From sequence record NC_070999.1: a stretch of 64,000 bases of DNA, one strand, 5' to 3'. The notes under the pieces are model-generated. The model was not told the DNA's origin. It saw nothing but the letters and a program-made list of their open reading frames with translations, and did not search any database. Positions within the stretch are counted from its first letter, which is position 1; each line of letters begins with the position of its first letter. The translations under genes and the position numbers were made by a program. Shown piece after piece: positions 1,415 to 64,000 of this stretch.

Positions 1415-2953
1415 TTAACCCATGTCGTCAAAATCAGAACCACCACCCATAGCTTCACTGCGATGAGAGAGTGACTTTCTGAAAGTCTTTTTATCAAAGT
1501 TTATATCGTGCACTAAACCATTTAAGGGGTCTAGTGGATAGATACCAAATCTAGCTGATTCAGCAGCACCTTCACCCCGCATCTTACCTACATAATAAGT
1601 GAAGTAACACTCATCATTGGTCATCTTAGCTACATGGAACGTAATCTCTACATCTACCTCGTTGGTCAGCTTGGTAGAACCCTCAGTCATTGATTTACCG
1701 CCGATATCTCTTGCAAAGTAAATTTCAGAATCATCATCAGATTCACGAATAAACTTTTTAGCATCAGGGTTTAATTGATGAGGAGTAAAGAATGCAGCAC
1801 CACGTGAACTAAAGAAGTTACGAGCACGACGATACAAGTCTTGAAGTTTATCAGAACGAGATTCACCTTGACAGCCGGTAAGATCAGCCATAGCCAAGTA
1901 ATCGTACGCACCTACAATTATTTCATGTCCACGAATTTCCAGGTTACGAACACGCTGCATAATCTCAGTGATGTTATCGTGACTCGGGTTTACACGAAAG
2001 AACTGGAAATCCCAACCATTGTCTTTAAATCCACTGATGATTGTTTCTACAACAGTATCAGTAGTTGCTTCAAAGAAGTTTGGTTTAACCCCGGTTTTAG
2101 CAGTAACAAAAAGTTCGTACATGCGCTTAAAGATCAAACCAAGAGAATCCTCGGCTGACATCAAACAAACAGTTGGAATACGACTTTTATCACGCAATAC
2201 AGGTTTATTATAAAGTGGGACAGATGCCAAGATATGAGCCAGACCAAATGACTTACCGCGGTTAGTCAAAGCGTTGATCATGTAGAACAAACCACGACGA
2301 ATCCCTAAGTCTGGATAAAGCGCTTCATTCAAACCAGCTAAACCAGTTTTCATGATACCTTCAGCGGAAGTTTCAATCTTCAATAGATCAATTACAGCTG
2401 CGATAGACTTTGGATCATTACTACTGGATTTCTCTACAACTGCTTTATCAAAGTTATTATCAGTATCTGAAATCTTAGCGGAGATAAGTTCGTTAATTTT
2501 AATCCAGTCTTCTCTTGTTAGATCTTCTTCACCATCAAACAAGAAAGGTCGAACCATGGATTTAAATTCATAACCAAATTTGTTCTTGACGTCATTATCA
2601 CGAAGTTCTTTAATAATCTCAAAAATGAGTTTCCGACTATCTTCTTCGTTATATTGATCATTAAATGTATTATTAAGAAGTTTCTCTAAAGTTGGATCGA
2701 GAATAACAATTTCACCAACTTTACTGACTGACAAAGATGTTATGATGTTGGAATCAACAGGTTGTTCCCTTATCCAAACTAAAAGTTTACGTAAGAGTGC
2801 TTCTACTCGTTTATCTTGTTGAACAAGACTTTCCTTACTTTTAGGAACCGATTCAGCCAACAAACTCAATTCATCCATCATGTCTGTATCGTGCAACCGC
2901 CAAGCTTGAAACATTGCTGTTGCTATTTTGACAAGACGAATTAGGTTATTCAT
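1415..2953 (-). CDS. dnaB: DnaB-like (SF4) replicative helicase, phiKZ gp118-like
   Basis: Walker A ALTNRGKSF, Walker B-like AYDYL, H4-like TPHQLN; 512 aa; lies upstream of the capsid gene as in phiKZ. Confidence 0.9.
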   Translation of the reverse strand: MNNLIRLVKIATAMFQAWRLHDTDMMDELSLLAESVPKSKESLVQQDKRVEALLRKLLVWIREQPVDSNIITSLSVSKVGEIVILDPTLEKLLNNTFNDQYNEEDSRKLIFEIIKELRDNDVKNKFGYEFKSMVRPFLFDGEEDLTREDWIKINELISAKISDTDNNFDKAVVEKSSSNDPKSIAAVIDLLKIETSAEGIMKTGLAGLNEALYPDLGIRRGLFYMINALTNRGKSFGLAHILASVPLYNKPVLRDKSRIPTVCLMSAEDSLGLIFKRMYELFVTAKTGVKPNFFEATTDTVVETIISGFKDNGWDFQFFRVNPSHDNITEIMQRVRNLEIRGHEIIVGAYDYLAMADLTGCQGESRSDKLQDLYRRARNFFSSRGAAFFTPHQLNPDAKKFIRESDDDSEIYFARDIGGKSMTEGSTKLTNEVDVEITFHVAKMTNDECYFTYYVGKMRGEGAAESARFGIYPLDPLNGLVHDINFDKKTFRKSLSHRSEAMGGGSDFDDMG

Positions 2954-2991
2954 ACGTAACTCCTTGGTGAAAATTCTGTTAGGTAACTAAT

Positions 2992-3543
2992 ATGCAAGTT
3001 AAATTGGGATTGAAAGAGACCAACGTCTATTTCCTAAGGGAACAAGACCTTGATCTTTTGAATGCAAACAAGCTTAGACTTGTTGATCTACCTTATCTGC
3101 CTAAATTTGATAATGTGGTTGACAGTGACTGCTTGGACTGGTTGGAATACCAACGAGCAGTGGAAAAGCAATACTGTGGTTTTAAGAATACAACTTATAC
3201 ACCTCTTGGTGATATTAAAAATGTTGAATTTAACCGGACAGGTACGGTCTATAAAACAAAGTATCAAGATGTTCTAAATTCCGACAAGAAGGTTAAAACA
3301 GGAAAGCATTTTTACTTCCACACAGCAGGTGGTCAGGTATTCATCCTCAATAGTAATAATATTGTGAAGAACGCCTTGTTCACTGAAGTGCCGGGAGATC
3401 TGTCTACTGCTGTTTATCGTTCCCTGCTAAATGCAGTGGGTTCTGTAGAGTTTTATTTCCGTGACTCTAAGGACTTATTCAAAACGTGCGAAGAACGCGG
3501 TTTCGTTGATCCTGGTTTTATTCTGTCCAAAGTAGTTGCGTAA
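2992..3543 (+). CDS. Hypothetical protein
   Basis: 183-aa ORF filling the gap between helicase and capsid genes. Confidence 0.75.
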   Translation: MQVKLGLKETNVYFLREQDLDLLNANKLRLVDLPYLPKFDNVVDSDCLDWLEYQRAVEKQYCGFKNTTYTPLGDIKNVEFNRTGTVYKTKYQDVLNSDKKVKTGKHFYFHTAGGQVFILNSNNIVKNALFTEVPGDLSTAVYRSLLNAVGSVEFYFRDSKDLFKTCEERGFVDPGFILSKVVA

Positions 3544-3669
3544 TGCTTTGTGATTAATAAGGATAGTTGTACGTTTAATGAATGTTATGCGTAAAACTCA
3601 CTCCTGTTGCGCAAACAAATATATTTGTTTTCGATATCGACATGTCTTTTTAAATGGGAATTTCTCTTT

Positions 3670-5841
3670 ATGACTATCCAATTTTCCGTGAAGGGTGCTG
3701 GTAACAAAGGCGCTCACCTGAAGAACGTAATGGCTAACCTGCAGGCTGTACAATTCAAAGAGGGTAACGTCTGGGCTGGTATTACTGGTAACGAATCTCT
3801 GAACGCTGTTGAAACCACCATCAATGCCGGTATCGGTTTTAACCAGAAGAGCGCTCTGGCTTCCGCTATTGGTTCTTTTGCTGATCAAAGTTTTGCTGAT
3901 CGTGCTGCTAAATTCGCTGACATGGTTAAAGTCGGTGGTATGGAATCCTTCTCTGCTTCTATGGAAGCTGGTAAGATCAACCGTCACAAAGCCGCTACTC
4001 TGGAACTGAACGCTCGTGGTAACCGTCAATGGGATGCTGCTGAAGAACTGTTCAAAACCGTTACCATCGGTTATGCTGACGAAAACCTGCAACTGCCGAT
4101 CGACGTAGCTGGTGTCGGTGCTTACAACGTTTCCGGTAACGTAAACGAATCTTTCGAAGATCTGCGTCCGATCGCCTCTGTTCTGGCTGATGACAAGTTC
4201 TCCTCAGGTGATGACCTGAAACTGGTTCCGGTTTATCCTGCTGACGCTAACAACCCGAACCGTGCTGCTTTCGTTGCTGAAGGTGACTGGACTCCTTGGG
4301 ATGAAGCTTATGAAGCTAATGACCTGCTGGGTCGTGAAGCTCACAAGACCAACTATCTGGCAATCCGCAAAGCTAACAACCTGATGAGCCTGTGTCAAGC
4401 TCCTGGTGCTCCGCGTTTTGAACAGAACGATGAAATCGAATCTGGTTCCATCCGTCTGAACAGCTTCCTGCTGAAGATCAAAACCAAAGATGGTGAGGGT
4501 TTCGCTACCCTGGACACTTCTACCATGTCCTCTACCGCCATGCGTCCTGGTACCGGTCTGACCTCTGATGAGAAGCGTCAAATCGCTTTCGTTATCAACG
4601 GTATGGACGTTGCCAACCTGAAGACCAAAGCTGGTGCACCGACCCAACTGTTCAAAACCCTGACTGATGCCGGTCTGCAAGTCTTTGTACAGTTTGAGTA
4701 CTCTGCTACCTATCAGCGTTCTACCCGTGCTCTGTCCCCGACTGTATCTCCTGTTACCATTGCTTATGTAATGAAGAATGGTGAGAAGCTGGTTCCGGGT
4801 ACCGCTGGTATGCCTGCTGATATTCAAGCTCTGATCACCGCTCAGGCTGTAGAAGCTTCTGTTCACGGTGTTGTTCTGAAAATGAACCACAACAACGTTA
4901 ACCAGAGCCGCTACGGTACCACCGTTGTGTTCGCTAACACCATCAAGAACTACGGCGTGCGTCGTCGGAACCCGATCTCTGTTAAGTACCCGATGCAAGG
5001 CGATGACACCAACGCTGACGTACTGGCTCAGCTGATCAAGCAGATGGATGTGCTGGTTACTCGTGAAATGTCTCACGATGCTTTCCGTGCAGCCCATGGT
5101 CACTTTGCATACCTGTATGACAACAACGGTCAGCAGATGGTTAACATCAACGATGATAGCTCCTCTGTTCTGCCGGGTCAGCACTTCCTGAACACCACTG
5201 CTGTACACAGCAAGTTCAAGCTGCTGGAGCAAGTTAATACTCTGGATTCCAAAGACGCTCTGGAGAACATCCGTGCTGTCCTGGTTAACAAGATCTATGA
5301 CATCATCACCGCTCTGCGTGTGAACTCCAACGTAGCTGCTTTGAAAGAGCTGGATGGTCGTGCTGAAGAGTATCGCGTAATCGCACACTCCTCCATGGCT
5401 CCGTTCTTGATGAACGCAGGTGACTACCGTACCTTCGGTAACAACGTCAAGTTTGAAGTTGTTGAAACCAACATCAACTCTGAGAAGGGTCTGCTGTGGG
5501 TTGTGCCGAAGTCCAACACCAAAGATGACGAAATCGATATCTATGGTGGTATGGGTATCTGCGTGACCAAGGAACTGCTGGTCATCGAAGGCGCTGTAAC
5601 TCAAGCTGATCGCCAGTACCGTATGCTGATCACTCAACCTGCTTATCAGCACCACGCTCTGAGTTGTGTGGCTGGTCTGGCTGAGATCGAAGACATTGCT
5701 CAGCTGCTGAGCGACGAAGGTCTGATCAGTGCCGTCAACAAGCACATGGTACAAGTCAGTGGTTCCACTGATCCTGTCGGTACCCAGAAGGTAGAAGTCA
5801 TGAACTGGCCAGCTACCGGCGGTTCTGTACAAGTACCGTAA
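3670..5841 (+). CDS. Major capsid protein, phiKZ gp120-like
   Basis: 723 aa from ATG 3670 (MTIQFSVKG); strong optimal-codon bias; GxES putative maturation sites in the N-terminus; helicase-x-MCP-x-RNAP synteny. Confidence 0.9.
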   Translation: MTIQFSVKGAGNKGAHLKNVMANLQAVQFKEGNVWAGITGNESLNAVETTINAGIGFNQKSALASAIGSFADQSFADRAAKFADMVKVGGMESFSASMEAGKINRHKAATLELNARGNRQWDAAEELFKTVTIGYADENLQLPIDVAGVGAYNVSGNVNESFEDLRPIASVLADDKFSSGDDLKLVPVYPADANNPNRAAFVAEGDWTPWDEAYEANDLLGREAHKTNYLAIRKANNLMSLCQAPGAPRFEQNDEIESGSIRLNSFLLKIKTKDGEGFATLDTSTMSSTAMRPGTGLTSDEKRQIAFVINGMDVANLKTKAGAPTQLFKTLTDAGLQVFVQFEYSATYQRSTRALSPTVSPVTIAYVMKNGEKLVPGTAGMPADIQALITAQAVEASVHGVVLKMNHNNVNQSRYGTTVVFANTIKNYGVRRRNPISVKYPMQGDDTNADVLAQLIKQMDVLVTREMSHDAFRAAHGHFAYLYDNNGQQMVNINDDSSSVLPGQHFLNTTAVHSKFKLLEQVNTLDSKDALENIRAVLVNKIYDIITALRVNSNVAALKELDGRAEEYRVIAHSSMAPFLMNAGDYRTFGNNVKFEVVETNINSEKGLLWVVPKSNTKDDEIDIYGGMGICVTKELLVIEGAVTQADRQYRMLITQPAYQHHALSCVAGLAEIEDIAQLLSDEGLISAVNKHMVQVSGSTDPVGTQKVEVMNWPATGGSVQVP

Positions 5842-44323: not shown

Positions 44324-46420
44324 TTAGTTTGTAAACACGTACCGCAAGTACGGCGTACCAGAGACAGACGAAATGTTAACCCCGCTTACTGTGAATGTCA
44401 TCACTATTGCCCCAGACAGGTTCGATTTCAAAGTGATGCTAGCACCGCTTGCGATGTATCCATTAATTTCAGCCCTGCTGAATTTTGATACAAACGACGA
44501 ACCGGATACTGTATCAGAAACATGGAACATCATGTTATTTACCAATGCCGCGTTGGTAATAGTGATTGGCCCAGCCACGGCTGGCGACCCTGGTCCAGTG
44601 TATCCGGCTGACAGAGTGTTGCTCTCCCCTACAATCAGTTTTGGTTTTGACTGGATAGTTCCAAACACAGAAATAATGGCCGCTCTTGGTGTGGTGTTTG
44701 CCGTTATATCCGAGCTGCTCTCCACGGCTATTGCGTAAGCTCTAAATCCATTTACACGTGTCACAGTGCAGACCCCGAATTGGAATCCGATATCATTGGA
44801 CACCCAAGCTTCATCCGCAAACGAGAAAGTCAACGAAGTCCCGTCACTCATGCCAGCAACAATGGTTTTAATCGCAGAGCCTACAGAAAGCGTGGCAATA
44901 TTGATACCTATGTCATTTAGACCGTTATATAAGTGGAATTTGTTCCTTGGAACACTTCTTACCAATAACCCTGCCTGATCTTCTTTATAGATGCTCTTGA
45001 CGACACCTGACCCGCCATCAAATAGTTGCAACAGGCTTATCTTACCGTCAAGTATGGAAATACCTTGCGGTTCATGTTGAGTAAGCGTTGTGATTGATAG
45101 CGGCGCACCCATCGAACTCCTTCTGAATGCCATGTAATCAAGAAGTACTCCGCCAGTAGACATCTTATATAGCGTCCAGTAGTCGTTCCATGCTCCGCCA
45201 GTCGATGACGCCCAAGCGCCACCGCATGTGACATACAGCTGACCGCCGCTGTATGTCAAACCTTGGGGGTAGCCGCCCTTCACCATCATTAAAGGAATGT
45301 TTGTATCACCTAGGAATCCATTCACCCTATCAAGGATGGACAGCCTGACGATAAAGGCGCTGGTGGCGTTGACATCTTGCAGTTGATATATCCTATCGGA
45401 GTCCTTGTCGTAGCAGAAGGGGAAATCCTTATACAGACCTGTGCATGTCGTCTCAGTCACCAAGCCGGTTACGAAGCTGTAAGTCGCAATCTTCGAGTCA
45501 GTGGACCCTCCGATAAAAACAACGTCATCGCTGATCACACCAATCCCTTGACCGTGACTAGCGATGTAGGGGGACCCAGCTGATTTGACGCCAGTGGATT
45601 TGTTTATGCGATATATTTTTGAATTGTATGGCGACCCAGTGCCGTCATCTTCTGTGATAAAATAATAGTTCTCACTCTCGGCTAGAGCTTGCGGATATGC
45701 AGCCCCGGACAGCGGCTCTTCCCACTGGGAAGAATATTTGGTAGGTAGGAAACCACGGTTTGCGGAGATAGTCATTGCCTCCACAACCCCATCGGAATCA
45801 AGCAGTGATGTATTGAGGTTTGTTCTAGTTGCGAGTGAAGAAACTAAATCTTCGTTAAAAAGCTCGTTACTTCTATCAACAAACCCACCGCTCGACGGAT
45901 TTGTACCAGCGGCAACAGCTCCAGCGGGGCCAGAGAACGCCTTCCCGGTACTCTCTTGCAGCAACACATCGTTAACGTTTACCAGTCTTCCACCTTGTTC
46001 AAAACTACCGTCAACCAGGTTGTATCCTGATTCTAAATAAGTTCTACGTAAAGCTTCTCTTGTAATTACACGCTCATCCCTAGTTACAATACCCCAACCT
46101 TTCTTACCACCTGGGGTAGGGGAACTATTAGCTGGAACTACATAGGGTAATTTACCATTCCAACTGTACCAGTATCCATCCGTTGGATAAAAGACGCATT
46201 TATCCCGATCACCAATACCTAAAGTCCCTCCACTAACAAAGTCAAAACCAGCTGGTTTAAACCCAACATCTTTCAAAGCTTGTTGTACAGTCTTGTGTTG
46301 TTTACCGAAACGATCCTGCCACAAAGCAGCTGGGGAATTCATCGCATAATCAAGCGAAATAGCGTTGTCTTGTAAGTCTTCTGTTGCTGAAGATCCAATA
46401 GGATTTTGTGTGAAAAACAT
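44324..46420 (-). CDS. Tailspike/RBP 1: shared anchor plus probable beta-propeller head
   Basis: N-terminal DRFG..PAGFDF.GG and REALRRTY..GSFEQGG modules; head with SHGQGIG, YPQGLTY, HEPQGIS motifs. Confidence 0.8.
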   Translation of the reverse strand: MFFTQNPIGSSATEDLQDNAISLDYAMNSPAALWQDRFGKQHKTVQQALKDVGFKPAGFDFVSGGTLGIGDRDKCVFYPTDGYWYSWNGKLPYVVPANSSPTPGGKKGWGIVTRDERVITREALRRTYLESGYNLVDGSFEQGGRLVNVNDVLLQESTGKAFSGPAGAVAAGTNPSSGGFVDRSNELFNEDLVSSLATRTNLNTSLLDSDGVVEAMTISANRGFLPTKYSSQWEEPLSGAAYPQALAESENYYFITEDDGTGSPYNSKIYRINKSTGVKSAGSPYIASHGQGIGVISDDVVFIGGSTDSKIATYSFVTGLVTETTCTGLYKDFPFCYDKDSDRIYQLQDVNATSAFIVRLSILDRVNGFLGDTNIPLMMVKGGYPQGLTYSGGQLYVTCGGAWASSTGGAWNDYWTLYKMSTGGVLLDYMAFRRSSMGAPLSITTLTQHEPQGISILDGKISLLQLFDGGSGVVKSIYKEDQAGLLVRSVPRNKFHLYNGLNDIGINIATLSVGSAIKTIVAGMSDGTSLTFSFADEAWVSNDIGFQFGVCTVTRVNGFRAYAIAVESSSDITANTTPRAAIISVFGTIQSKPKLIVGESNTLSAGYTGPGSPAVAGPITITNAALVNNMMFHVSDTVSGSSFVSKFSRAEINGYIASGASITLKSNLSGAIVMTFTVSGVNISSVSGTPYLRYVFTN

Positions 46421-54457: not shown

Positions 54458-54476
54458 TTTGGTAGAATAACTAATA

Positions 54477-54510
54477 AACTCTCTACTCCCAATTAAGGGA
54501 GTAGAGAGTT
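54477..54510 (+). terminator. Hairpin terminator
   Basis: aactctctactccc-aattaa-gggagtagagagtt, 14-bp stem. Confidence 0.85.
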
Positions 54511-54605: not shown

Positions 54606-56801
54606 ATGTCTAGCAATAAACCTTTCCCGTCGTCAGATCTTGACGTATTTAAAGACAACAGTCTTATATTAGACAACTTTGTCAACAGTCAGGATAATGA
54701 ATATCCTGATCGTTTTGGTCGTAAGAGACCAACTATTACAGGGATCATCAAAGAAGCCTTTAACGTTCGTACTGACATTTCCAATATGAATGAAACTCTT
54801 ATTGGTCAAAGTCGTTGGGACACGGTTCCTAAGAACACCAGTTTGACTTTAGGTGGCGATAACGGAGCTTTGAACAAGCAAGCACAAGCATTGTTTAACC
54901 GTACTGAAATGTTGAAAGTTCACTCTAGAGAAGCTTTACGTAGAACTTATTTAGAAGTGGGCTTAAATTTAGTTGAAGGCAGTTTTGAAGAAGGTGGGAC
55001 TTTAGAAACGCTCACAGACATACTCATCGAAGATAAAACAGGTAAATGTTATTCTTGGAAAGGTTCACTCCCAAAAGTAATCAATAAAGGTGAAACACCA
55101 AGCGAAAATGGATGGTTTTTGGTTTCTAAGTTATCTCCTGAACATTTTGGCGCAGGTGGGGAAGGAAGCACCGATGACACCTTGGCACTTAAAAGGTTTA
55201 TTCAGGCGATTTTAGATGGTGTTGATTGTAAATTTCAAAGAAATAAGATTTACAATGTTAGTTCTAACTTAAGTTTTATTCTATCTGATAAAATTTACGA
55301 AATAGATTTTAAGGATTGTGTTATTAGGTACATAACACCAATCCCCGAAATGACACTGGTCAAGGTGCTTAATTTCACCCAACCTGACCACACAAAACAA
55401 ACATCATTGAAAGTTAGTAACTTAAAAATTATTTCAGATATCCCCTATTTTGAATCGGTAACTGCTAGTGATAGACGAGGGATTTGGGGGATGACATTTA
55501 CAGGAATAAAAGATTTTACAGTAGAAAACTATAAAGCTGAGAATTTGTTTTACGGGTCAGGGTTAACAGCTAGTAAATATAATAAAGGTTATATCAGAAA
55601 TATTAATTTTGTTAACGTTGGGAGTAAATTTAACCCAACTAAAGATGACGTTTCTGCGTCGGATGCAGCAGGTGATGGTTTCCATTTTTACGATGTTATT
55701 GGCGATGCTTCTACGGTAATGGAAAATGTAACCACAAGTTCTTACACTGACAAGATAGGCAGGTGCGGAGTGGCTTTAGAAGCCTTTGGGAACTTAGGTA
55801 CTTCGCATAACGTTTCAATAAAAAATGGGAATTTCTTTGGGTACCATCGTGTTGTACATCAGGAAGATGGTGGAATTTCTGTTATAAGTTGGGAAGGTGG
55901 GGAGGTTAGAGATTTTTCAAACCTTTTTGTTTCTGTACAAGGTACCGTGGGGAACTTACGTGGTGTTTTTAATAATCTAAAAATCACTGTTAATCAAAAA
56001 ATTGCATATGGCGGTGTCTCTGGTTTAGTTAATTTTCAGCAGGGTGGGCGATTAGTTTTAAATGAATGTTTTATAAAATACCTGAGCAGTGTCCAGCAAA
56101 AAGGTCCGTTGACTATAAATAATTCAGTATTGGATCTTGGGTCTAAAACAATTTTTCATGCCAGTTTAAATGAAATTATTTATAACAATTGCAATTTAAT
56201 TGCTGATAATGGAAAATTTGACACATCTGGTCAGCCAAAGGGGTTTGTATTTAATAATTGTTTTGGAAAGAAATTCGTTATAGTTAGTCAAAATCCTATA
56301 GTTAAAATATCTCATTGTGAGTTCGAAGACGTTAATTTTAAACTTACCAATACAGGGACTAGAAATAGCGAAATTCGAGACACTAGTATTCACTACAGCT
56401 TAGGTACAACAATTTTAGAAAATTCTTATAACTGTGGAATTGATTTTTTAAACACCAATATCACATCTATCGGGATCTCAGTAATTTATGGCGACGGAAA
56501 CGTGGACAGCAACGTTAAGTCATGTACTTTGAAAAATGTAAAACTGCAGATTTCGAATGGAAACGCTGATCCAGAAGGTAGAGATGTAGTTCAGATAACA
56601 GGGACTAAATTCATTGCTACAGAATCAAGTTTCGGAACGTCTTTTTTTAACAAATACCAAGCTGCTGGAGTTGTTCAATCCTGTATTTTTATAGATAAAA
56701 CAACGGAACAAACATTAGTCAAAGAGACAGATGGACCTGTGTTTTTGGTCACTGGGCGCGGTAACGTATTAATAAATAAAGCTGGCGGACAGAGTATTTA
56801 A
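54606..56801 (+). CDS. Tailspike/RBP 2: anchor plus right-handed beta-helix (putative depolymerase)
   Basis: ATG 54606 with GAGG SD; DRFG motif, GSFEEGG module, PEHFGAGGEGSTDDTLAL pectate-lyase-3-like entry, beta-helix repeats. Confidence 0.85.
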   Translation: MSSNKPFPSSDLDVFKDNSLILDNFVNSQDNEYPDRFGRKRPTITGIIKEAFNVRTDISNMNETLIGQSRWDTVPKNTSLTLGGDNGALNKQAQALFNRTEMLKVHSREALRRTYLEVGLNLVEGSFEEGGTLETLTDILIEDKTGKCYSWKGSLPKVINKGETPSENGWFLVSKLSPEHFGAGGEGSTDDTLALKRFIQAILDGVDCKFQRNKIYNVSSNLSFILSDKIYEIDFKDCVIRYITPIPEMTLVKVLNFTQPDHTKQTSLKVSNLKIISDIPYFESVTASDRRGIWGMTFTGIKDFTVENYKAENLFYGSGLTASKYNKGYIRNINFVNVGSKFNPTKDDVSASDAAGDGFHFYDVIGDASTVMENVTTSSYTDKIGRCGVALEAFGNLGTSHNVSIKNGNFFGYHRVVHQEDGGISVISWEGGEVRDFSNLFVSVQGTVGNLRGVFNNLKITVNQKIAYGGVSGLVNFQQGGRLVLNECFIKYLSSVQQKGPLTINNSVLDLGSKTIFHASLNEIIYNNCNLIADNGKFDTSGQPKGFVFNNCFGKKFVIVSQNPIVKISHCEFEDVNFKLTNTGTRNSEIRDTSIHYSLGTTILENSYNCGIDFLNTNITSIGISVIYGDGNVDSNVKSCTLKNVKLQISNGNADPEGRDVVQITGTKFIATESSFGTSFFNKYQAAGVVQSCIFIDKTTEQTLVKETDGPVFLVTGRGNVLINKAGGQSI

Positions 56802-56804
56802 TTA

Positions 56805-56837
56805 AACCCTACTTACTCCTAAGGAGTAAGTAGGGTT
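56805..56837 (+). terminator. Hairpin terminator
   Basis: aaccctacttactcc-taa-ggagtaagtagggtt followed by atttt. Confidence 0.85.
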
Positions 56838-56898
56838 ATTTTATATTCTTTATTTTACTGATTTTATGACCTTAGAAATTAAATCAAGGAATAAGTAT

Positions 56899-59181
56899 AT
56901 GAGTCATAACACTGGTAATGATTTAGAATCTTCAGATATCTTAGATTTTGAAGATAACTGTGAAAACTTAGATGTTTTAATGAACACTGATCAAGACCAC
57001 TGGACAGATCGTCTTGGTAACAAACGTCCTACAATTGATTACGCTTTGCGTATGGCTGGATTCACTCCTGCTGGTTTTGATTTCACTACAGGCGGTGTTT
57101 TAAAGAATGGTGATAGAAACAAGTGTGTATTTAACCAAGCTGATCAAACTTGGTATAGTTGGTCAGGAGATCTTCCTTATAATGTAATTGCTGGAAGTGT
57201 TCCTGGAGAAGGTTGGAAAGTTGTCAATAGGCATTCCTTAATCATAGCAAGAGAGGCACTTCGTAGAACTTATCAAGAAGTTGGATTAAATCTGGTTGAA
57301 GGTTCTTTTGAACAAGGTGGCACCCTTGTAAATAGTAATGATGTGTTACTCCACGAAACTAGTAGTAAGGTATATGCTGGTGAGGTAGGATCATATCCAG
57401 CTGGAACAGAACCTGTTGGGGCTACTTGGATAGATATGTCAGCTGTGTCTGTGCGGGATCAGTTATCTGTCAATAACGGCGCCTCGATGATTGGCACCTC
57501 GGTAGGCCGGACTATTGAAAACAGACTATCAGACACCATTAAAGTTATTGACTATAAAACCCTTGGTAGGACATACCCAGAGGCTATTGCGACCTGTATA
57601 GCCTACGCAAAGGAGCTACAAGCCTCTGGGAAGTCGGTAAAAATATCCTTCGAAAATTGCGATGCTTTTATAACAACGACAGTGGGGTTTGTTCTCGACT
57701 TCCCCGTTATCTGGGACCAGTGTAAAACTAGGATTACTGGCGATGGTTCTATACCCACCCTTTTAAAATGTACAGCTGCTGACATTTGGTTGTGTAACTT
57801 TAGCCTTCGCGGGGTGGGTGACGGCGACAACACTAGACTACTGTGGATGAGTGGCGCGCCTAGTTTCCGCATTCAGAACGGTGACGTCAGTAATGGTAAG
57901 GAGGGCTGGTGGTGTGATGGTGGATCTTACGGTGGATTCATTGATGTCTTCACGGTCAACAACAATGTGTCACGCGGGATATACTGTGATGTTGTGACCA
58001 GCGCAGAACATTCGTGGCGTGACGTGTACGTTGGGTTGTCGAAGTCATACCTAACCGACTCTACAGTTGGCATTGAAATGTACTCAAGCAGTGTGATCGA
58101 TTCTGGCGGGTATCACTGGTACAACGTGTTAGTCGTAAATAACACGGCTGCTGGCGCGAAAGCTGGTAAAGGTGTTTATCTGAATGGGTCAAATTTCCAA
58201 GGCATTACTCCGATTCATTGGGTTGGTGGGGGCGCTGATGGTTTTATCAAAGCTAACGGTAAGACTGGCGTGAACATCAGAAACTGGGCGCAGGTTAAGT
58301 GCGTTAACGTCTGGACATCTAACTGCGAAATCAACAGCGCAGATAGCCCTCAGTGGATTGGTGGTAATTGTTCAACTGGTTTTACCCTCAAGGGTACTAT
58401 TAAAGACCCAGCATTCATCGCCCCACGTTGCGGCGAGGCGGTAGATGGAGCTTATCTGCTAGACCCAGCGCTCACGATAACTGGATTTATCAGAGAGTAT
58501 AATACAATCACCTCTCTAATAACCAATAACCTTACTAAATGGATTTTTTATACGAGAAACTCGCTTGTAAAAACCACATCAACAGAAAGCTCTTTTACAG
58601 CCGAAAGGTACAGTGATCAGACTGGGTTAACCAAGTTTTACCGTCGCATAAATTCTGTCGGTGAAAACACTTTCCTTAAAAGCGATTTCACCGACCACAC
58701 AGTAATGCGACAAAATGGCCAGTTGTATGTCCCAGGTGGGTATGCGCCGTTCACCGGTGTTCACCAGATGCGTTCTAGTGAGTACATTGATAATGGGAAA
58801 GTTGTCATATTTGTGAATTCAGAACAAATTGTTGATCGTCTAACCGTATACAACTCTGAATTAGAAGTCGATGAGGATGTCGCTGTAGTGACAGAGGGTG
58901 AGGTAAAGCTGTGTAACGAGGATGACTCTCTGTTGTTTGCTGGGATTGTAGTTGAGTCACAGCTAATCGGTGACTACTATCTCGTCACTGTTGCAGCATC
59001 TGGTGATAACTCAATGCCACAACTCGATTGCGTGGCTGTTGATGGTGATTTCTCAATTGGCGACCTATTATCAACGTCAGCAACAGGTCTGCTTAAGCGG
59101 TATGAAGGTAATGATTTGCGGATCCCTTGCTTGCGTGTGAAAGGAGTTAGAAACGGAAAGGCCTATGGGTACTTCCTTTGA
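56899..59181 (+). CDS. Tailspike/RBP 3: anchor, beta-helix and probable C-terminal chaperone-like domain
   Basis: ATG 56899 with AAGGA SD; NTGN..DRLG, PAGFDF and GSFEQGG modules; GASMIG neck; C-terminal FTGVH...GDLLSTS. Confidence 0.85.
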   Translation: MSHNTGNDLESSDILDFEDNCENLDVLMNTDQDHWTDRLGNKRPTIDYALRMAGFTPAGFDFTTGGVLKNGDRNKCVFNQADQTWYSWSGDLPYNVIAGSVPGEGWKVVNRHSLIIAREALRRTYQEVGLNLVEGSFEQGGTLVNSNDVLLHETSSKVYAGEVGSYPAGTEPVGATWIDMSAVSVRDQLSVNNGASMIGTSVGRTIENRLSDTIKVIDYKTLGRTYPEAIATCIAYAKELQASGKSVKISFENCDAFITTTVGFVLDFPVIWDQCKTRITGDGSIPTLLKCTAADIWLCNFSLRGVGDGDNTRLLWMSGAPSFRIQNGDVSNGKEGWWCDGGSYGGFIDVFTVNNNVSRGIYCDVVTSAEHSWRDVYVGLSKSYLTDSTVGIEMYSSSVIDSGGYHWYNVLVVNNTAAGAKAGKGVYLNGSNFQGITPIHWVGGGADGFIKANGKTGVNIRNWAQVKCVNVWTSNCEINSADSPQWIGGNCSTGFTLKGTIKDPAFIAPRCGEAVDGAYLLDPALTITGFIREYNTITSLITNNLTKWIFYTRNSLVKTTSTESSFTAERYSDQTGLTKFYRRINSVGENTFLKSDFTDHTVMRQNGQLYVPGGYAPFTGVHQMRSSEYIDNGKVVIFVNSEQIVDRLTVYNSELEVDEDVAVVTEGEVKLCNEDDSLLFAGIVVESQLIGDYYLVTVAASGDNSMPQLDCVAVDGDFSIGDLLSTSATGLLKRYEGNDLRIPCLRVKGVRNGKAYGYFL

Positions 59182-59384
59182 CAACAAACCTTTAAAAAGG
59201 TACCATGCTGAAACAAGTGATGGTATTTGGAGAAAATATTTAAAATTTGGTAAAGTTCAGACAGCTGCACTGGGGTGGTAATTCTTATCGGTAGTGGGGG
59301 TAACTGTTACAGTTAAAAATAACCTCTGTATCACTACACCCTCCCCCACACTGTTGTTACTGTTAATTTTTAAGGAGTTGAGAA

Positions 59385-59786
59385 ATGACTTTACAAGATT
59401 TCCTTTCTCACTATCAATACAAACCTGATCCTGTTAAGAAAGATATTTGGATTATTCCTAACAAAGTTAACAATCAATATCTTGATGATTGTGATGGATT
59501 CTGTTTAGGAGTGTTATTCTACGTTCTTGCTAATAGTTCACTTCTTACGTTCTGGTATTTGTTACTGTTTACAGATACTAGAATTTATTATGTGATTACT
59601 AGTAAAAACATTGGTCATGTAGTATTGAAACACAAAGGTCTTTATATTGACACTTATTCAAAAGCTTGGGTGAGTAAAGAACAGATGTCGTCTTATGGAC
59701 ATAAGTTCCATTGGTCTAAAATGTTCTTTTTCTGGCAAGTTGCTTTGAAGATGTTAATTGGTAAGATCTTAGTTAAAATGAAATAG
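59385..59786 (+). CDS. Transglutaminase-like (BTLCP/LapG-like) cysteine protease
   Basis: YKPDP..DIW, DDCDGF (Cys), GHVVL (His), YID (Asp) in papain/transglutaminase order. Confidence 0.6.
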   Translation: MTLQDFLSHYQYKPDPVKKDIWIIPNKVNNQYLDDCDGFCLGVLFYVLANSSLLTFWYLLLFTDTRIYYVITSKNIGHVVLKHKGLYIDTYSKAWVSKEQMSSYGHKFHWSKMFFFWQVALKMLIGKILVKMK

Positions 59787-59795
59787 TAATAAATA

Positions 59796-59829
59796 CTCTC
59801 TACTTCTCCAATTAAGGAGAAGTAGAGAG
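59796..59829 (+). terminator. Hairpin terminator
   Basis: ctctctacttctcc-aattaa-ggagaagtagagag. Confidence 0.8.
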
Positions 59830-59885
59830 ATTCTTTAATTGATTTTATGTACTTTAGTTTAACAGTAAAGAGAAGGTAAAGATTT

Positions 59886-61001
59886 ATGAGCTTTAATACA
59901 GGTAACGATTTACCGAGCTTAGACGAGCGTGATCTCTACGATAACGCTACTAATCTTGACAAAGCAATGAATAGCACTGATCCAACCTGGACAGATAGAT
60001 TTGGAGTTGAGAAACCTACAATTGACGCAGCTTTGAAATCTGCAGGATTTATGCCAGCTGGTTTTGACTTTGTAACTGGCGGCACTCTTCAACCTGGAGA
60101 TCGTAATAAAGCTGTTTATAACCCAGCACCTAATGGTGATAATAACTGGTATCGTTGGAATGGGTCGTTTCCAAAGGAAATTGCTGCTAATAGTCAACCT
60201 AATCCTAAAGATGAAAATAATTGGGTTCCTGTTATATTTAAATCTAGGTTCGGCAGAGAAAGCGATATTTTACAGTATATGATCGGACCTAATAAGGTTT
60301 CAATCACAGCTCATCGTGGATACTGGAGATTTTCTACTGAAAACTCTATTAAATCTATAACTAAAGCAGGTATGCTTGGTTTTGACATGGTGGAGTTAGA
60401 TGTAGAGTTTACCTCTGATATGGTCCCTGTTTTGTTACATGACGTGACTTTAGATAGAACCACATCTGGTACTGGTAGCGTTAGAACAAAGACCTTTTCG
60501 GAACTTTCCGGTTTATACTTAACCAACGACCCGGATGGTGATCGTGAACCAATCCCTACATTCAGGGATGCTGTGATCGCATGTAAGAAGTTTGGTCTTT
60601 CGATTAACATAGATTGGAAATTTTCTGGGACGTGGTACGATGACGATAAGTATTTGCGTATCGTTTATGATATTTTAATTAAGGAAGGTTATAGTCATAA
60701 ATCATTTTTCATGATTAATGACCACAAAAACCGGCTCCAAATGAAAAATATAGATCCAACGATGTCTATGGGATTTTTAACTACTAATCCTTCCGATATT
60801 AATATTATAAACACCTTTTATCCTGGATGTTTAGTTGGAATGAGAGTAGGAACCTCGCAAACCATCATAGATCAGTTTTTAGCTAATAAAACACCAGTCT
60901 ACATCTATGGGTGTGAAACACATCAGCAGATTGAACAGGCGTTAAAATCTGGCGCTAGTTTTATTGAAACTAACGACTTTATACCTTCTGGAGTGATCTA
61001 A
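59886..61001 (+). CDS. Tailspike/RBP 4: anchor fused to glycerophosphodiester phosphodiesterase (GDPD)
   Basis: N-terminal NTGN..DRFG..PAGFDF module; ITAHRG, TENS, VELDV..TSD..VLLHD..LDRTT GDPD motifs. Confidence 0.88.
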   Translation: MSFNTGNDLPSLDERDLYDNATNLDKAMNSTDPTWTDRFGVEKPTIDAALKSAGFMPAGFDFVTGGTLQPGDRNKAVYNPAPNGDNNWYRWNGSFPKEIAANSQPNPKDENNWVPVIFKSRFGRESDILQYMIGPNKVSITAHRGYWRFSTENSIKSITKAGMLGFDMVELDVEFTSDMVPVLLHDVTLDRTTSGTGSVRTKTFSELSGLYLTNDPDGDREPIPTFRDAVIACKKFGLSINIDWKFSGTWYDDDKYLRIVYDILIKEGYSHKSFFMINDHKNRLQMKNIDPTMSMGFLTTNPSDINIINTFYPGCLVGMRVGTSQTIIDQFLANKTPVYIYGCETHQQIEQALKSGASFIETNDFIPSGVI

Positions 61002-61924
61002 TGTATATCAGTAATAGTTTGCTTTTAACACCTCTCTCTTGTGGAGGCGGTGGTGGTCAGGGTAAGTTATTCACAACTATACCTAGTGAGTTGGCAGAAA
61101 GAAAGGTACTTATTAACTCACCTGAAAAAAGTTGGTTTAAAATGGGTGCGTTAGATCCGTATCTGGAGCATCATTTTCCTAATGTTGGACCTGGAATGAT
61201 TGTTAATATTAAGTTGACAATACAAACTCCAGGTAAGACCTTTAAAATCACTGGTCTAGGACAGGATTTAAGCTTCAACGTCGTTCCAAACGTAACCACG
61301 CCTTTTGATATTAACATTCCTATTTTTACCAATCCTACACAGAAATATATCAATATTAGAGGAATGGAAATTAACACTGTTTTATCAGATGTTAGAATTT
61401 CAATAACTGGTAACGAAGTCTTTCAAGACTTTGTAGTGATGAGAACACCCGCGACACTGCTTGAAAATATACATTATTCCCCATCCGTTAATAACATCAT
61501 ACCCACTAAGATGAATCTGTCAAAAGACTTGCTTACATCTGGTGTTATTGTAAAAACAGATCAGGGAATAAATTGGAATTCAGGTCCGGAAAATAAGCAA
61601 AAAACATTTGGACCAGTTAGGATCGTCCCAGTTGAAATGCAGGGTGGGGTCTTAATGGCGCGTTTTAAATACAGTTCCAATTTACCCTTTATGTTAAGAC
61701 TATGGAGTCTTACAGGTGTAACAACAGATCTGTTTTTTCCAGCCGGGGAAAATCAAGACATTTTTAGAGATACTTACGTAAAGACTAAAAATGACGTTAT
61801 TATAGCAACAATGTCCAATTTTGATTACGCTGGGACTTGGAACTGTTCCGTCCAAGCTGCTGATTTTTCTTTCACTTCTATCAATAGTGACGTGAAGTTG
61901 ATAAGAGAATTTAAAGGTTGGTAA
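61001..61924 (+). CDS. Probable virion accessory protein coupled to the GDPD spike
   Basis: 307 aa; TAATG overlap; N-terminal LLL..GGGGG; two beta-rich halves. Confidence 0.65.
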   Translation: MYISNSLLLTPLSCGGGGGQGKLFTTIPSELAERKVLINSPEKSWFKMGALDPYLEHHFPNVGPGMIVNIKLTIQTPGKTFKITGLGQDLSFNVVPNVTTPFDINIPIFTNPTQKYINIRGMEINTVLSDVRISITGNEVFQDFVVMRTPATLLENIHYSPSVNNIIPTKMNLSKDLLTSGVIVKTDQGINWNSGPENKQKTFGPVRIVPVEMQGGVLMARFKYSSNLPFMLRLWSLTGVTTDLFFPAGENQDIFRDTYVKTKNDVIIATMSNFDYAGTWNCSVQAADFSFTSINSDVKLIREFKGW

Positions 61925-61954
61925 AGTATCCCGGACTTCGGTCCGGGATACTTT
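61923..61954. terminator. Bidirectional terminator with C(UUCG)G loop
   Basis: aaagtatcccggac-ttcg-gtccgggatacttt between convergent genes. Confidence 0.9.
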
Positions 61955-64000
61955 TATCTTTTCATTTCAACATTAACTATTACATCCCAACTTCTTTCAT
62001 TATCAGTTAGAATGACTCTCAATTGTGTTTCTCCTATTTTACCTGTGCTAGAAACATTAATTCTATATCTTCCGTCTTCTACTAATTTAAGTCCTTTACC
62101 AACTGTGTGGATATAAGTGGGATCAAAACTAATATTTGCAATTACATCGGTATTCAGTGGAACATTTGGATTATTGTATTTATCTAGTTTAACAGTAAAG
62201 TCGATATCTGAATTGACGTTAAGAACAGCTATTCCATCTGTAACATCTGTAACTTTAGGTATGGTTGGGTTAACTTCAATCTCGTTCTTGTCAGAACGCA
62301 CGACAGTTCCACCTAAGTTCACACTAATAATAAACCCAGCTTTACCACCTAAGTGACTTAACATCAAATGGGATTGATAAATACCATTCACTGGATCAAT
62401 AAGGTCAATAAAACTATCTGTCCCAATAATGGTCGGTAAATTATTATCTCCATTCTCATAACCCACACCGGCTGTTCTAGCATTGTAGATATAAGACCCA
62501 GTTTGATCTTTGAGTTTATACAAAATAGCTTGTTTGGTACTAGCAGCAAAGTTCTTAGTTAGTAATTCAACAGTTATCCCTGTAATAACCTTTCTTGTTA
62601 CCTGTACTAATCCTCCTACTTCCTTCCTATATAAACTAACACCATCTAATAATCTAACTTCCAAATCTATTTCAGAAATATCAACTTCTCCCATAGGAAC
62701 AGACTTAGTAGTTTCCAAAACTATTCCATCTGGTTCAATTGATTTAACTAAAACTTCTGAGGAACTTAATTTTACATTTACAGTTATTCTAGGATCTGTT
62801 AACAAAACAGTATTTCCATTATAACTAACTGAAACATTAAGCTTTTTACTTAAGTACGATTCAATACTCACCATTCCGTCCATATTAACTTTCAATGGAT
62901 AAGAAGGTTGAATATCACTGTTTACTAGCAACTCACCGATATCATCAGGATTAGCACTATCATTAAACTTCAATACCGAAGTTACTGGGCCCTGTTCCAC
63001 TAAACTATAACCAATAGTAATAAACTGTTCAGTTACTTTCCTCAGTGGATTAAAATTGATATTAGGGTACAAAGTTGACAACTCAGGTTTATATTGAACT
63101 CTAGTGTTTATCCGTTCACGTTTATTATAAACACAAACATCAAATTCCCCAGTTTCCAATTCCCTTCCTTCCAAGTCTTTAGATTTAGGTAACAAAACCA
63201 AATCAGGTCCAGTGTAGCCTAAAATCTCAAACTCCTGTTCCCAAGAGAAGTCCTTCTCAATCCCATCTACCAAAACTTTAAATTTGAAATTAACTTTCTT
63301 ATTAACAGTTGTACTTTCCCCATCAACAACTATCCAACTATTCTGAATAGTCCAAGGATCAAAGTTCATTATTACTGGGGAAGTTTCACTGTTCTCAATA
63401 TTCACATCTCTAACTTTATCACTTGACTCATTACCATTAATATAAACTTGAAATGGTAAAGGTCCTTTCTGATAACGTTCAACAGTTTTATTAAAACTAT
63501 TTCTAGGTCTAAGATCTACAGTAGAAACTTTAATAACTTCTACATTTAACTTGTCAGTTCTAGAGTAAAGTTCTCCATTACTAGCGGGATACTTTAATCC
63601 AAAGTTAATTGTATCAGTAATGATCGTTCCAGGTGAATTAGAATCCTGAACAATTTCATATCCAAAACTCTCTGTATCGATGTCTGTGACATTTATCAGT
63701 TGTCTTTGACCTACCAGGCCAGTATTAACACCACACTGATTTAAAGTGATTGGGGAACCCTTTAACTTAACCTGATAAGTTATACTTCCAATATCACCTT
63801 TCTCACCTTTAATTAGCACTGGTTCTAAGTTAACTAACTCTAACTGATCCTGTTCACCTAAAGGCTTAACTACTTCTAACTCTACAAACAAGTTGCCTTT
63901 ATTTCCCAGGTAACTAAATTCTCCAATAATAAGATCATTGAAACTAGAATTGTAATCAGGAAGAATAGTAGTTGGTACACCTGTATAAAGTAACCCATCT
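61954..64000 (-). CDS. Large beta-rich (Ig-like repeat) virion protein, 5' end beyond the window
   Basis: Frame stays open from the TTG at 63891 to the window edge; V/I/N/D/T-rich beta-sandwich-like segments. Confidence 0.65.
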   Translation of the reverse strand, partial: DGLLYTGVPTTILPDYNSSFNDLIIGEFSYLGNKGNLFVELEVVKPLGEQDQLELVNLEPVLIKGEKGDIGSITYQVKLKGSPITLNQCGVNTGLVGQRQLINVTDIDTESFGYEIVQDSNSPGTIITDTINFGLKYPASNGELYSRTDKLNVEVIKVSTVDLRPRNSFNKTVERYQKGPLPFQVYINGNESSDKVRDVNIENSETSPVIMNFDPWTIQNSWIVVDGESTTVNKKVNFKFKVLVDGIEKDFSWEQEFEILGYTGPDLVLLPKSKDLEGRELETGEFDVCVYNKRERINTRVQYKPELSTLYPNINFNPLRKVTEQFITIGYSLVEQGPVTSVLKFNDSANPDDIGELLVNSDIQPSYPLKVNMDGMVSIESYLSKKLNVSVSYNGNTVLLTDPRITVNVKLSSSEVLVKSIEPDGIVLETTKSVPMGEVDISEIDLEVRLLDGVSLYRKEVGGLVQVTRKVITGITVELLTKNFAASTKQAILYKLKDQTGSYIYNARTAGVGYENGDNNLPTIIGTDSFIDLIDPVNGIYQSHLMLSHLGGKAGFIISVNLGGTVVRSDKNEIEVNPTIPKVTDVTDGIAVLNVNSDIDFTVKLDKYNNPNVPLNTDVIANISFDPTYIHTVGKGLKLVEDGRYRINVSSTGKIGETQLRVILTDNERSWDVIVNVEMKR

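Follow-up and report, generated by a model that had tools for sequence, protein, structure and literature searches.

A putative glycerophosphodiesterase tailspike and its downstream partner gene in the Aeromonas jumbo phage pAEv1810

The Aeromonas phage pAEv1810 (NC_070999/OL964756) carries two overlapping genes, gp189 (PQC65_gp189) and gp190 (PQC65_gp190), within a 64,000-nucleotide stretch of its genome that was analysed computationally and is referred to here as the window; a position in the window equals the position in the pAEv1810 record minus 124000. The product of gp189 joins a tailspike anchor to a glycerophosphodiester phosphodiesterase (GDPD) domain, and the product of gp190 has a predicted all-beta fold. 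Our preferred reading, to which we give a probability of roughly 0.55, is that gp189 is a virion-bound phosphodiesterase acting on a glycerophosphate-bearing surface glycan and that gp190 is its binding subunit, acting in trans. The two parts of this reading differ in strength. Judged from its domains and active-site residues, gp189 is probably a virion-attached, active phosphodiesterase, and a glycan-binding role for gp190, suggested by analogy, has somewhat less than an even chance of being correct. All virion GDPDs described to date belong to phages of Gram-positive bacteria. What is new here, on the evidence of gene order and sequence, is that in several phage lineages a GDPD head is accompanied by a partner gene of its own that moves with it.

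Nucleotides 56800 to 63950 of the window are 100% identical to pAEv1810, the record of which is classified in the genus Ferozepurvirus. A 2025 paper (PMC12837969) assigns this genus to the Chimalliviridae, the phiKZ-like jumbo phages that form a nucleus, and gives A. veronii as the host of pAEv1810. A phiKZ-type major capsid protein is encoded in the window at 3607–5841 (PF25620, E 4.8e-180). A preliminary description of this DNA had proposed a phiKZ-like phage, which is borne out by both the taxonomic placement and the capsid match. It had also called the tailspike anchor enterobacterial. This part was wrong, as the host is an Aeromonas and the anchor is one common to the phage's own genus. 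Both open reading frames (ORFs) on which that description was based exist, at 59886–61001 (371 aa) and 61001–61924 (307 aa).

Domain organisation of gp189

RefSeq annotates gp189 as 'tail fiber protein' and gp190 as 'hypothetical'. Pfam identified Tail_spike_N (PF18668) at residues 59–106 of gp189 with a score of 27.5 bits against a cut-off of 25 (E 3.5e-6), and the N-terminus also fell in tail spike PHROGs (E 6e-13). The first 106 residues resemble residues 5–108 of gp13, the tailspike of Shigella phage Sf11 (E 5e-9). In the cryo-EM structure of Sf11 (PMC12724387), an adaptor helix from the distal tail protein is bundled together with three N-terminal helices contributed by the gp13 trimer. 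From this likeness we infer that gp189 would form trimers and attach to the virion, with Sf11 gp13 as the best available model for its mounting on the tail. Identity of the gp189 anchor to the tailspike N-termini of phages AVP1, PS1, PS2 and ACP1 is 85–87%, and identity to the N-termini of gp170 and gp187 of pAEv1810 itself is 50–56%; with gp186, the Tail_spike_N-type proteins of this phage number four. An inverted nucleotide repeat links 46184–46280 in gp170 with 60029–60125 in gp189.

The anchor of gp189 ends at about residue 119 and the GDPD domain starts at about residue 135, with a short linker between them. The neck segment that follows the anchor in gp170, gp186, gp187 and the sister-phage spikes is missing. 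The preliminary description had the anchor fused directly to the GDPD domain, and this stands: both Pfam domains match, with almost no neck between them. The neck-coding segments of gp186, gp187 and gp170 (54927–55000, 57250–57323 and 45990–46060, respectively) are conserved at 80–83% nucleotide identity and are a likely crossover site for head swapping.

The GDPD domain (PF03009) was found at residues 143–299 with 82.5 bits against a cut-off of 23.6 (E 6.5e-23). Solved GDPD structures also matched (3i10, E 1.5e-17; 2pz0, E 2.7e-11), as did PHROG 16641, a 'tail fiber protein' family with members that contain a GDPD-like segment, over residues 139–357. The Pfam, PDB and Sf11 values lie far outside what chance would produce. 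According to a survey of the GDPD family (PMC10194240), its members need a pair of catalytic His residues and a metal site with three acidic ligands, one of them Asp and the other two Glu. Residues H143, R144, G145, E152, N153, E170, D172, H185 and D186 of gp189 were invariant in an alignment of divergent GDPDs. All of them line up with the matching motifs of the solved structures 3i10 and 2pz0, in which H143 and H185 correspond to the His of HRG and of HD. The column of the third metal ligand, which holds Glu in most GDPDs, is occupied in gp189 by D243 (motif D243/K245). Asp is also present at this column in 3i10 and in the GDPD head of L007, a related sequence in which the head is 49% identical to that of gp189. 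From the alignment we read D243 as a conservative variant of an active enzyme and not as a loss of function. The proposal that all canonical GDPD motifs are present therefore needs one correction: both His residues, E170 and D172 are kept, but one of the five catalytic or metal-binding residues is Asp and not Glu. Because the C-terminal residues G356 and T362 are conserved in the alignment, the barrel appears complete by sequence; the Pfam match covers profile positions 1–167 only, the second half of the domain being divergent.

Tail-borne GDPD domains are rare in phages of Gram-negative hosts. A GDPD-domain query matched 309 of 50,697 GenBank phage records, ~95% of which were phages of Gram-positive bacteria (by organism name, Staphylococcus 246, Lactobacillus 18, Enterococcus 8, Listeria 6, Weissella 3 and Bacillus 3). 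The convincing Gram-negative cases among these records were pAEv1810, DTL and Snitter. A Tail_spike_N-type anchor together with a GDPD domain was found in no other of the 50,697 records, and full-text literature searches returned neither a GDPD-type tailspike described for a Gram-negative phage nor a GDPD receptor-binding protein tied to O-antigen. The architecture had been singled out as unusual; it is rare, but not unique, since GDPD-ended tail proteins also occur in metagenomic relatives and in two T1-like phages of Erwinia and E. coli. One further candidate, a match to the tailspike of Salmonella phage FSL SP-031 that reached into the GDPD region, was rejected because Pfam gives a beta-helix there and not a GDPD domain.

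The gp189–gp190 pair and its exchange among phages

The stop codon of gp189 and the ATG of gp190 overlap by one base, the final A of TAA, and a GGAG sequence lies 7 nt upstream of this ATG. Translational coupling of the two genes is a reasonable inference from this geometry. The preliminary description had presented gp190 as a translationally coupled, beta-rich partner; the 1-nt overlap, the separate GGAG and a low-confidence all-beta model agree with that description. A frameshift fusion of the two proteins was considered and rejected, as the gp190 frame stays open for only ~10 codons ahead of its ATG and the junctions of homologous pairs vary, with 1-nt overlaps, 4-nt overlaps and short gaps. 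Strong hairpins bracket the pair (Table 1), and thus gp189–gp190 looks like a two-gene unit. An AT-rich motif located between the upstream hairpin and gp189 had two matches in the window (56836–56856 and 59840–59860) against 0.11 expected in a pattern search, and is possibly a phage promoter preceding both gp187 and gp189. Hairpins with similar 14–15 bp stems precede gp186 (~54470–54510), gp187 (56805–56837) and gp189. The combination of hairpin and AT-rich motif could be a terminator-plus-late-promoter unit that also acts as a recombination junction for cassette exchange.

No match to gp190 was found in Pfam, PHROG, NCBIfam or the sequences of the PDB. When 1.84 billion representative proteins were scanned in full with HMMER, only two homologues came up, both encoded directly downstream of GDPD genes, and no relative was found in IMG/VR or, beyond pAEv1810, among GenBank phages. 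The first homologue (P0079) is 87% identical and lies on a 1.1-kb contig, on which a gp189-like GDPD, represented by its C-terminal end, comes first and overlaps it in the same way. The differences between this gene and gp190 are mostly synonymous, with a ratio of nonsynonymous to synonymous substitution rates (dN/dS) of 0.055, and therefore gp190 is a real protein-coding gene under strong constraint. The second homologue (P0080) has 418 aa, is 26% identical, and overlaps by 4 nt a GDPD gene whose product is 49% identical to the head of gp189.

The head of gp189 and all of gp190 occupy a slot that is filled differently in sister phages. In blastn comparisons with AVP1 (L005) and with L002, a syntenic metagenomic contig, homology ended at 60241–60242, corresponding to codon ~119 of gp189, and resumed at 61951–61952, after the gp190 stop codon. 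The slot of AVP1 contains the rest of a single 622-aa tailspike and two small ORFs, and that of L002 holds another GDPD head (P0002) and, after it, a 404-aa ORF. A third and very divergent GDPD head, on an anchor with 83% identity (P0003), is found in the slot of L003 and L004, followed by an overlapping 256-aa ORF. Other proteins carry GDSL esterase or pectate-lyase-like heads on the same anchor, at 84–97% identity. As different heads fill this slot, we conclude that it is a site for host-range cassettes and that GDPD cassettes have entered it at least three times. The GC content of the cassette (0.33–0.41) equals the phage background. The idea that the GDPD head was taken recently from a gene of the host was rejected, because genome and metagenome scans gave only generic GDPDs of 25–43% identity, none of them from Aeromonas.

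Outside this slot as well, GDPD heads are followed immediately by a partner ORF. GDPD-ended tail proteins were identified in five further Gram-negative phage contexts, each immediately followed by an ORF of 256–418 aa without a family match. Pairs were found in pAEv1810, L006, L007 (head 49% identical, partner 26% identical, 4-nt overlap), L002, L003, L014/L015, Erwinia phage Snitter and E. coli phage DTL. We grouped the partners into family A (gp190), family B (the L002 partner), family C (the partners of L003, L014 and L015) and family D (the partners of Snitter and DTL). The family C partner, which is 256 aa long in L003, is >90% identical in L014 and L015. These two contigs are lambdoid and siphovirus-like, with genes for tape measure, NlpC/P60, RecT, NinG and DnaB proteins, and in them the partner overlaps by 1 nt a 549-aa Tail_spike_N–GDPD protein. 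The head of this protein is ~70% identical to that of P0003, whereas its anchor is only 34% identical. As head and partner are similar and the anchor is not, head and partner appear to have moved together between unrelated phage types. The GDPD spike, apparently with two anchor-like repeats, and its family C partner occupy 8352–10771 of L014/L015, right after the tail tip genes; from this position the same cassette would serve a non-contractile tail.

Snitter, a member of the Drexlerviridae, encodes a 634-aa tail protein with GDPD at residues 407–630, and a 263-aa ORF begins one base later. The K-12 phage DTL has a 458-aa fibre with GDPD at residues 229–451, followed by a 265-aa ORF that is 32% identical to the Snitter hypothetical protein QXG07654 (E 8e-26). 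This ORF, at 4231–5028 of L176 (MG050172), is unannotated and is apparently a gene missed in both DTL records. Profile comparison shows remote homology between families C and D (hhalign probability 79%, E 1.6e-5, 131 columns). Comparisons of gp190 with the partners of L002, L003, Snitter and L011 by BLASTP and hhalign were all non-significant, and family B likewise had no significant link to families C and D. Families B and C had no match in GenBank phages, and the Snitter partner, used as query in a word-indexed search, had no match other than itself. Two IMG/VR contigs encode long proteins ending in GDPD and followed by a co-directional ORF, to which we give little weight. In L007, an Acyl_transf_3 acyltransferase gene (2381–3331, minus strand) adjoins the distant GDPD–partner pair; genes of this type often modify O-antigen in temperate phages.

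Structural models were compared for families A and C. The AlphaFold (AF2) model of gp190, which had three sequences behind it, is all-beta with two blocks (residues 22–136 and 190–293) and a low mean pLDDT of 48.7. Its Foldseek matches were all tandem arrays of carbohydrate-binding beta-sandwiches, among them GH101 accessory domains, Vip3 C-terminal domains, tandems of carbohydrate-binding modules (CBMs) of families CBM22 and CBM51, and SGBP-B, at TM scores of only 0.22–0.31. The family C model was built on 12 sequences, reached a pLDDT of 79.6 and consists of two all-beta domains (residues 10–131 and 138–255). These domains matched single CBMs in the PDB at target-normalised TM scores of 0.5–0.65, including 8xmz (a porphyran-binding CBM), 1gui (CBM4), 4d0q (hyaluronan-binding), CBM61, CBM16 and CBM22. 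The family C model also matched CBA120 TSP4, K2-2 tailspikes and the same tandem arrays as gp190. Among predicted viral structures, it matched tail fibre and tail spike proteins and proteins described as 'CenC-like carbohydrate-binding'. On this model, the family C partner can be assigned confidently a predicted fold of two CBM-like beta-sandwiches. The suggestion that the partner may supply substrate binding is thus strengthened by the conserved pairing and by the family C model, but its extension to gp190 is made by analogy, from the shared gene position, the similar layout of two all-beta blocks and the similar kind of structural matches.

Proposed function and competing explanations

Under the preferred reading, the genus-wide anchor of ~119 residues, probably a trimeric module of helical and beta structure, would dock on a tail or baseplate adaptor as Sf11 gp13 does, so that gp189 would be mounted on the tail beside the three other spikes, gp170, gp186 and gp187. 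Each gp189 chain would carry a metal-dependent GDPD TIM barrel in place of the usual neck and beta-helix. This barrel would hydrolyse a glycerol-phosphate phosphodiester bond in the O-antigen or capsule of the host, either cutting a teichoic-acid-like backbone or stripping a phosphoglycerol side group, and the tail would then reach the outer membrane. gp190 would be made from the same transcript by coupled translation and would be a two-domain, CBM-like subunit with affinity for the glycan, joined to the GDPD head by non-covalent contacts. Head and partner would be exchanged between phages as one cassette.

Several observations weigh against this reading. The third metal ligand of gp189 is Asp and not Glu. 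The gp190 model is of low confidence (pLDDT 48.7), and structural matches at TM scores of 0.22–0.31 could be meaningless. gp190 has no significant similarity to families B, C and D, the best comparison giving E 0.058 over 98 columns in consistent register. The TIM-barrel head has no obvious trimerisation surface by which three heads and the partner could be arranged. Finally, adjacency to the next gene is expected anyway in any tail module.

Two versions of the preferred reading differ in the bond that is cut. In the first, GDPD strips phosphoglycerol or glycerol from an O-antigen that is left intact, in the manner of deacetylase tailspikes. The O-chain of A. caviae ATCC 15468 carries phosphoglycerol as a side substituent, and this substituent is an immunodominant epitope (PMC3210612). 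In addition, close relatives carry GDSL/SGNH esterase heads on the same anchor, and the neighbouring tailspike in L002 matches the domains of G7C gp63.1; the phage lineage therefore already uses decoration-removing enzymes. This version is possible, at about one chance in three. In the second version, which we consider slightly less probable than the first, GDPD would act as a depolymerase that cuts main-chain phosphodiesters of a teichoic-acid-like capsule or O-antigen. Poly(glycerol phosphate) teichoic acid is the presumed target of virion GDPDs in Gram-positive phages, sister-phage tailspikes in the same slot have pectate-lyase-like depolymerase heads, and the sister phage Z90 makes halos. 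However, the Z90 halo is not attributable to a GDPD, and no Aeromonas glycan with glycerol phosphate in its backbone was found in the searchable literature. As the only Aeromonas glycan found in that literature to contain glycerol phosphate has it as a side substituent, removal of a side group is at least as likely as depolymerisation. The preliminary description had predicted depolymerisation of a glycerophosphate-linked capsule or O-antigen, which remains one option but was over-specific.

A different role for gp190 is that of an assembly chaperone for the GDPD spike, or of a protein otherwise absent from the virion. The genes for tail fibre chaperones such as lambda Tfa and T4 gp38 usually come straight after the fibre gene and vary together with its C-terminal head, and the behaviour of the cassette fits this pattern. 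However, known tail fibre chaperones are small, and the GDPD partners are large (256–418 aa) and all-beta, with the appearance of tandem CBMs where they were modelled confidently. Moreover, neither gp190 nor any other partner matched a chaperone family in Pfam, PHROG or NCBIfam, and cellular GDPD barrels stand alone at ~250 aa. A chaperone role is improbable, with a chance of around one in five. A receptor-blocking lipoprotein of the Llp/Cor type was also considered for gp190 and rejected. A lipoprotein signal peptide contains a lipobox with a conserved Cys; the N-terminus of gp190 lacks a basic n-region and is hydrophobic over a short stretch only, its Cys14 is Ala in P0080, and the other partner proteins start without a hydrophobic leader. 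Comparison of gp190 with the C-terminal parts of the esterase spikes on the same anchor revealed no similarity.

The substrate could instead be a lipid-linked phosphodiester, either the phosphoglyceride or lyso-phosphatidylglycerol anchor of a polysaccharide or a lysophospholipid, in which case cleavage would release the polymer from the membrane. gp189 has weak NCBIfam similarity to lysophosphatidylglycerol phospholipase D (E 4e-9), a GDPD fibre is present in the E. coli K-12 phage DTL, E. coli K-12 lacks O-antigen, and the enterobacterial common antigen is joined to its lipid anchor through a phosphodiester bond. However, gp189 scores far short of the cut-off for that NCBIfam family, and a membrane-proximal anchor would be poorly accessible to a distal spike, such that we regard this explanation as very unlikely. 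Least likely of all is a catalytically dead GDPD domain retained as a binding module, for which the Glu-to-Asp change and the divergent second half of the domain could be cited, but both catalytic His residues, Arg144, E152/N153, E170 and D172 are kept, and Asp, which can still bind metal, is shared with the best PDB match, 3i10, and with the L007 head.

Tailspike enzymes decide which strains can be infected, and those known from Gram-negative phages fall into three classes, glycosidases, lyases and acetyl-esterases. The chemistry of a phosphodiesterase head would be new to this list and would suggest that receptors in Aeromonas include O-antigens or capsules that bear glycerophosphate. Aeromonas is a major pathogen of fish, and these jumbo phages are under consideration for its biocontrol. 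More broadly, a GDPD head with a trans-encoded tandem-CBM partner may constitute a distinct and unrecognised two-subunit class of receptor-modifying proteins that targets phosphoglycerol-decorated or phosphodiester-linked glycans and is exchanged among jumbo phiKZ-like, lambdoid and T1-like phages. We advance this generalisation tentatively and consider it clearly less probable than the reading of the pAEv1810 pair itself. If it is true, the phosphodiester chemistry of O-antigen and capsule would be a determinant of host range beside glycosidic and acetyl-ester chemistry. The conserved pairing also suggests a design rule in which a compact monomer-type enzyme, without the long binding groove of a beta-helix, may be complemented by a binding subunit in trans. 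Such partner genes are currently annotated as hypothetical or, in E. coli phage DTL, are not annotated.

Genomic neighbourhood and comparison with known systems

The features of the region are collected in Table 1. The gp187 ORF, as delimited mechanically, starts at 56866; the ATG at 56899 is backed by anchor homology and by the RefSeq annotation. gp188 has no family match in Pfam or PHROG, contains a hydrophobic central stretch and sits between tailspike genes in pAEv1810, AVP1 and L002. gp191, which converges on the cassette, is kept across the genus (88–91% identical in AVP1 and L002) and has no Pfam or PHROG match; it might be a structural tail protein, possibly a spike adaptor. Two GC-rich islands (~0.48–0.49 against a background of ~0.37) are present in the window, one at 3607–5841 (the major capsid gene) and the other at 44324–46420 (gp170).

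Table 1. Positions of the gp189–gp190 pair, its parts and neighbouring features in the window
Feature	Position	Strand	Basis or remark
gp170, tailspike with the same anchor type	44324..46420	-	N-terminus 50% identical to gp189; GC 0.48
gp186, tailspike with a more distant version of the anchor	54606..56801	+	Tail_spike_N E 1.5e-6; anchor alignment
gp187, tailspike with homologous anchor	56899..59181	+	Tail_spike_N; N-terminus 56% identical to gp189; RefSeq start
gp188, 133 aa, conserved small neighbour outside the cassette	59385..59786	+	Same place in AVP1 and L002
Hairpin after gp188, 14 bp stem, terminator-like on both strands; 5' edge of the gp189–gp190 unit	59796..59829	+	
AT-rich motif between hairpin and gp189 start	59840..59860	+	Also upstream of gp187
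gp189 (PQC65_gp189), 371 aa, tailspike anchor and GDPD head	59886..61001	+	ORF, Pfam, PHROG tail fibre/tail spike families
N-terminal anchor of gp189, aa 1–119, Tail_spike_N type	59886..60242	+	Common to sister phages
Variable cassette, GDPD head and gp190	60243..61950	+	Other heads in sister phages
GDPD catalytic domain of gp189, aa ~135–371	60288..60998	+	Pfam and PDB matches; key-residue columns invariant
Junction: GGAG 60990–60993, gp189 TAA 60999–61001, gp190 ATG 61001–61003	60990..61003	+	
gp190 (PQC65_gp190), 307 aa, predicted all-beta, no family	61001..61924	+	
GC-rich hairpin terminator between convergent gp190 and gp191	61923..61954	+	
gp191, 1049 aa in the full record, extends off the window end	61954..64000	-	Right-hand conserved flank of the cassette

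The anchor system of gp189 is a familiar one. In CBA120 TSP1–4, G7C gp66 and Sf11 gp13, as in pAEv1810, an N-terminal module sets attachment and the heads are exchangeable. The heads of those proteins are trimeric beta-helices, whereas gp189 has a monomer-type TIM barrel directly after the anchor, with no neck. The SGNH/GDSL esterase tailspikes of the G7C gp63.1 type place a non-glycosidase head, which alters the glycan without cleaving it, on the same modular anchor system. The gp63.1 protein of E. coli phage G7C is reportedly an O-antigen deacetylase. A GDSL esterase head is found on an anchor 97% identical to that of gp189 (P0004), and gp63.1 domains occur next door in L002. The esterase spikes use carboxyl-ester chemistry and have their C-terminal ~300 aa in cis, whereas the predicted chemistry in pAEv1810 is that of a phosphodiester and the additional part is encoded by a separate gene.

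Separately encoded accessory binding proteins are known from gp38 at the long tail fibre tip of T2/S16-type phages and from BppA of Tuc2009. Like these, gp190 is encoded directly after a fibre or receptor-binding protein gene and co-varies with the tip; it has no detected sequence or family relationship to them, and its attachment and its binding in trans are putative. With the cellular GDPDs of the GlpQ/UgpQ type (3i10, 2pz0), gp189 shares the family and the catalytic residues. The cellular enzymes are stand-alone proteins of ~250 aa that act on small diesters or teichoic acid, and those nearest to gp189 are the 25–43% identical, non-Aeromonas proteins already described.

Close parallels are the GDPDs of Gram-positive phage virions. 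Lactobacillus phage Ld17 carries a glycerophosphodiesterase in its baseplate, according to papers that cite the original work, and the petal of Staphylococcus phage 812/K (PDB 9euf) is a second example; both have the same tail-borne PF03009 domain and the same catalytic residues as gp189. These enzymes are assumed to cleave glycerophosphate polymers of the envelope before DNA delivery. Identity to gp189 is only 22–37% and is confined to the GDPD domain. The Ld17 and 812/K domains sit in the central spike or baseplate (Tal/BppU-type), whereas the non-GDPD part of gp189 is the anchor of a side tailspike. In the central spike of phage 812, a lectin-like knob and the GDPD petal belong to one virion protein (PMC13433997); in pAEv1810, the putative binding part is a separate polypeptide.

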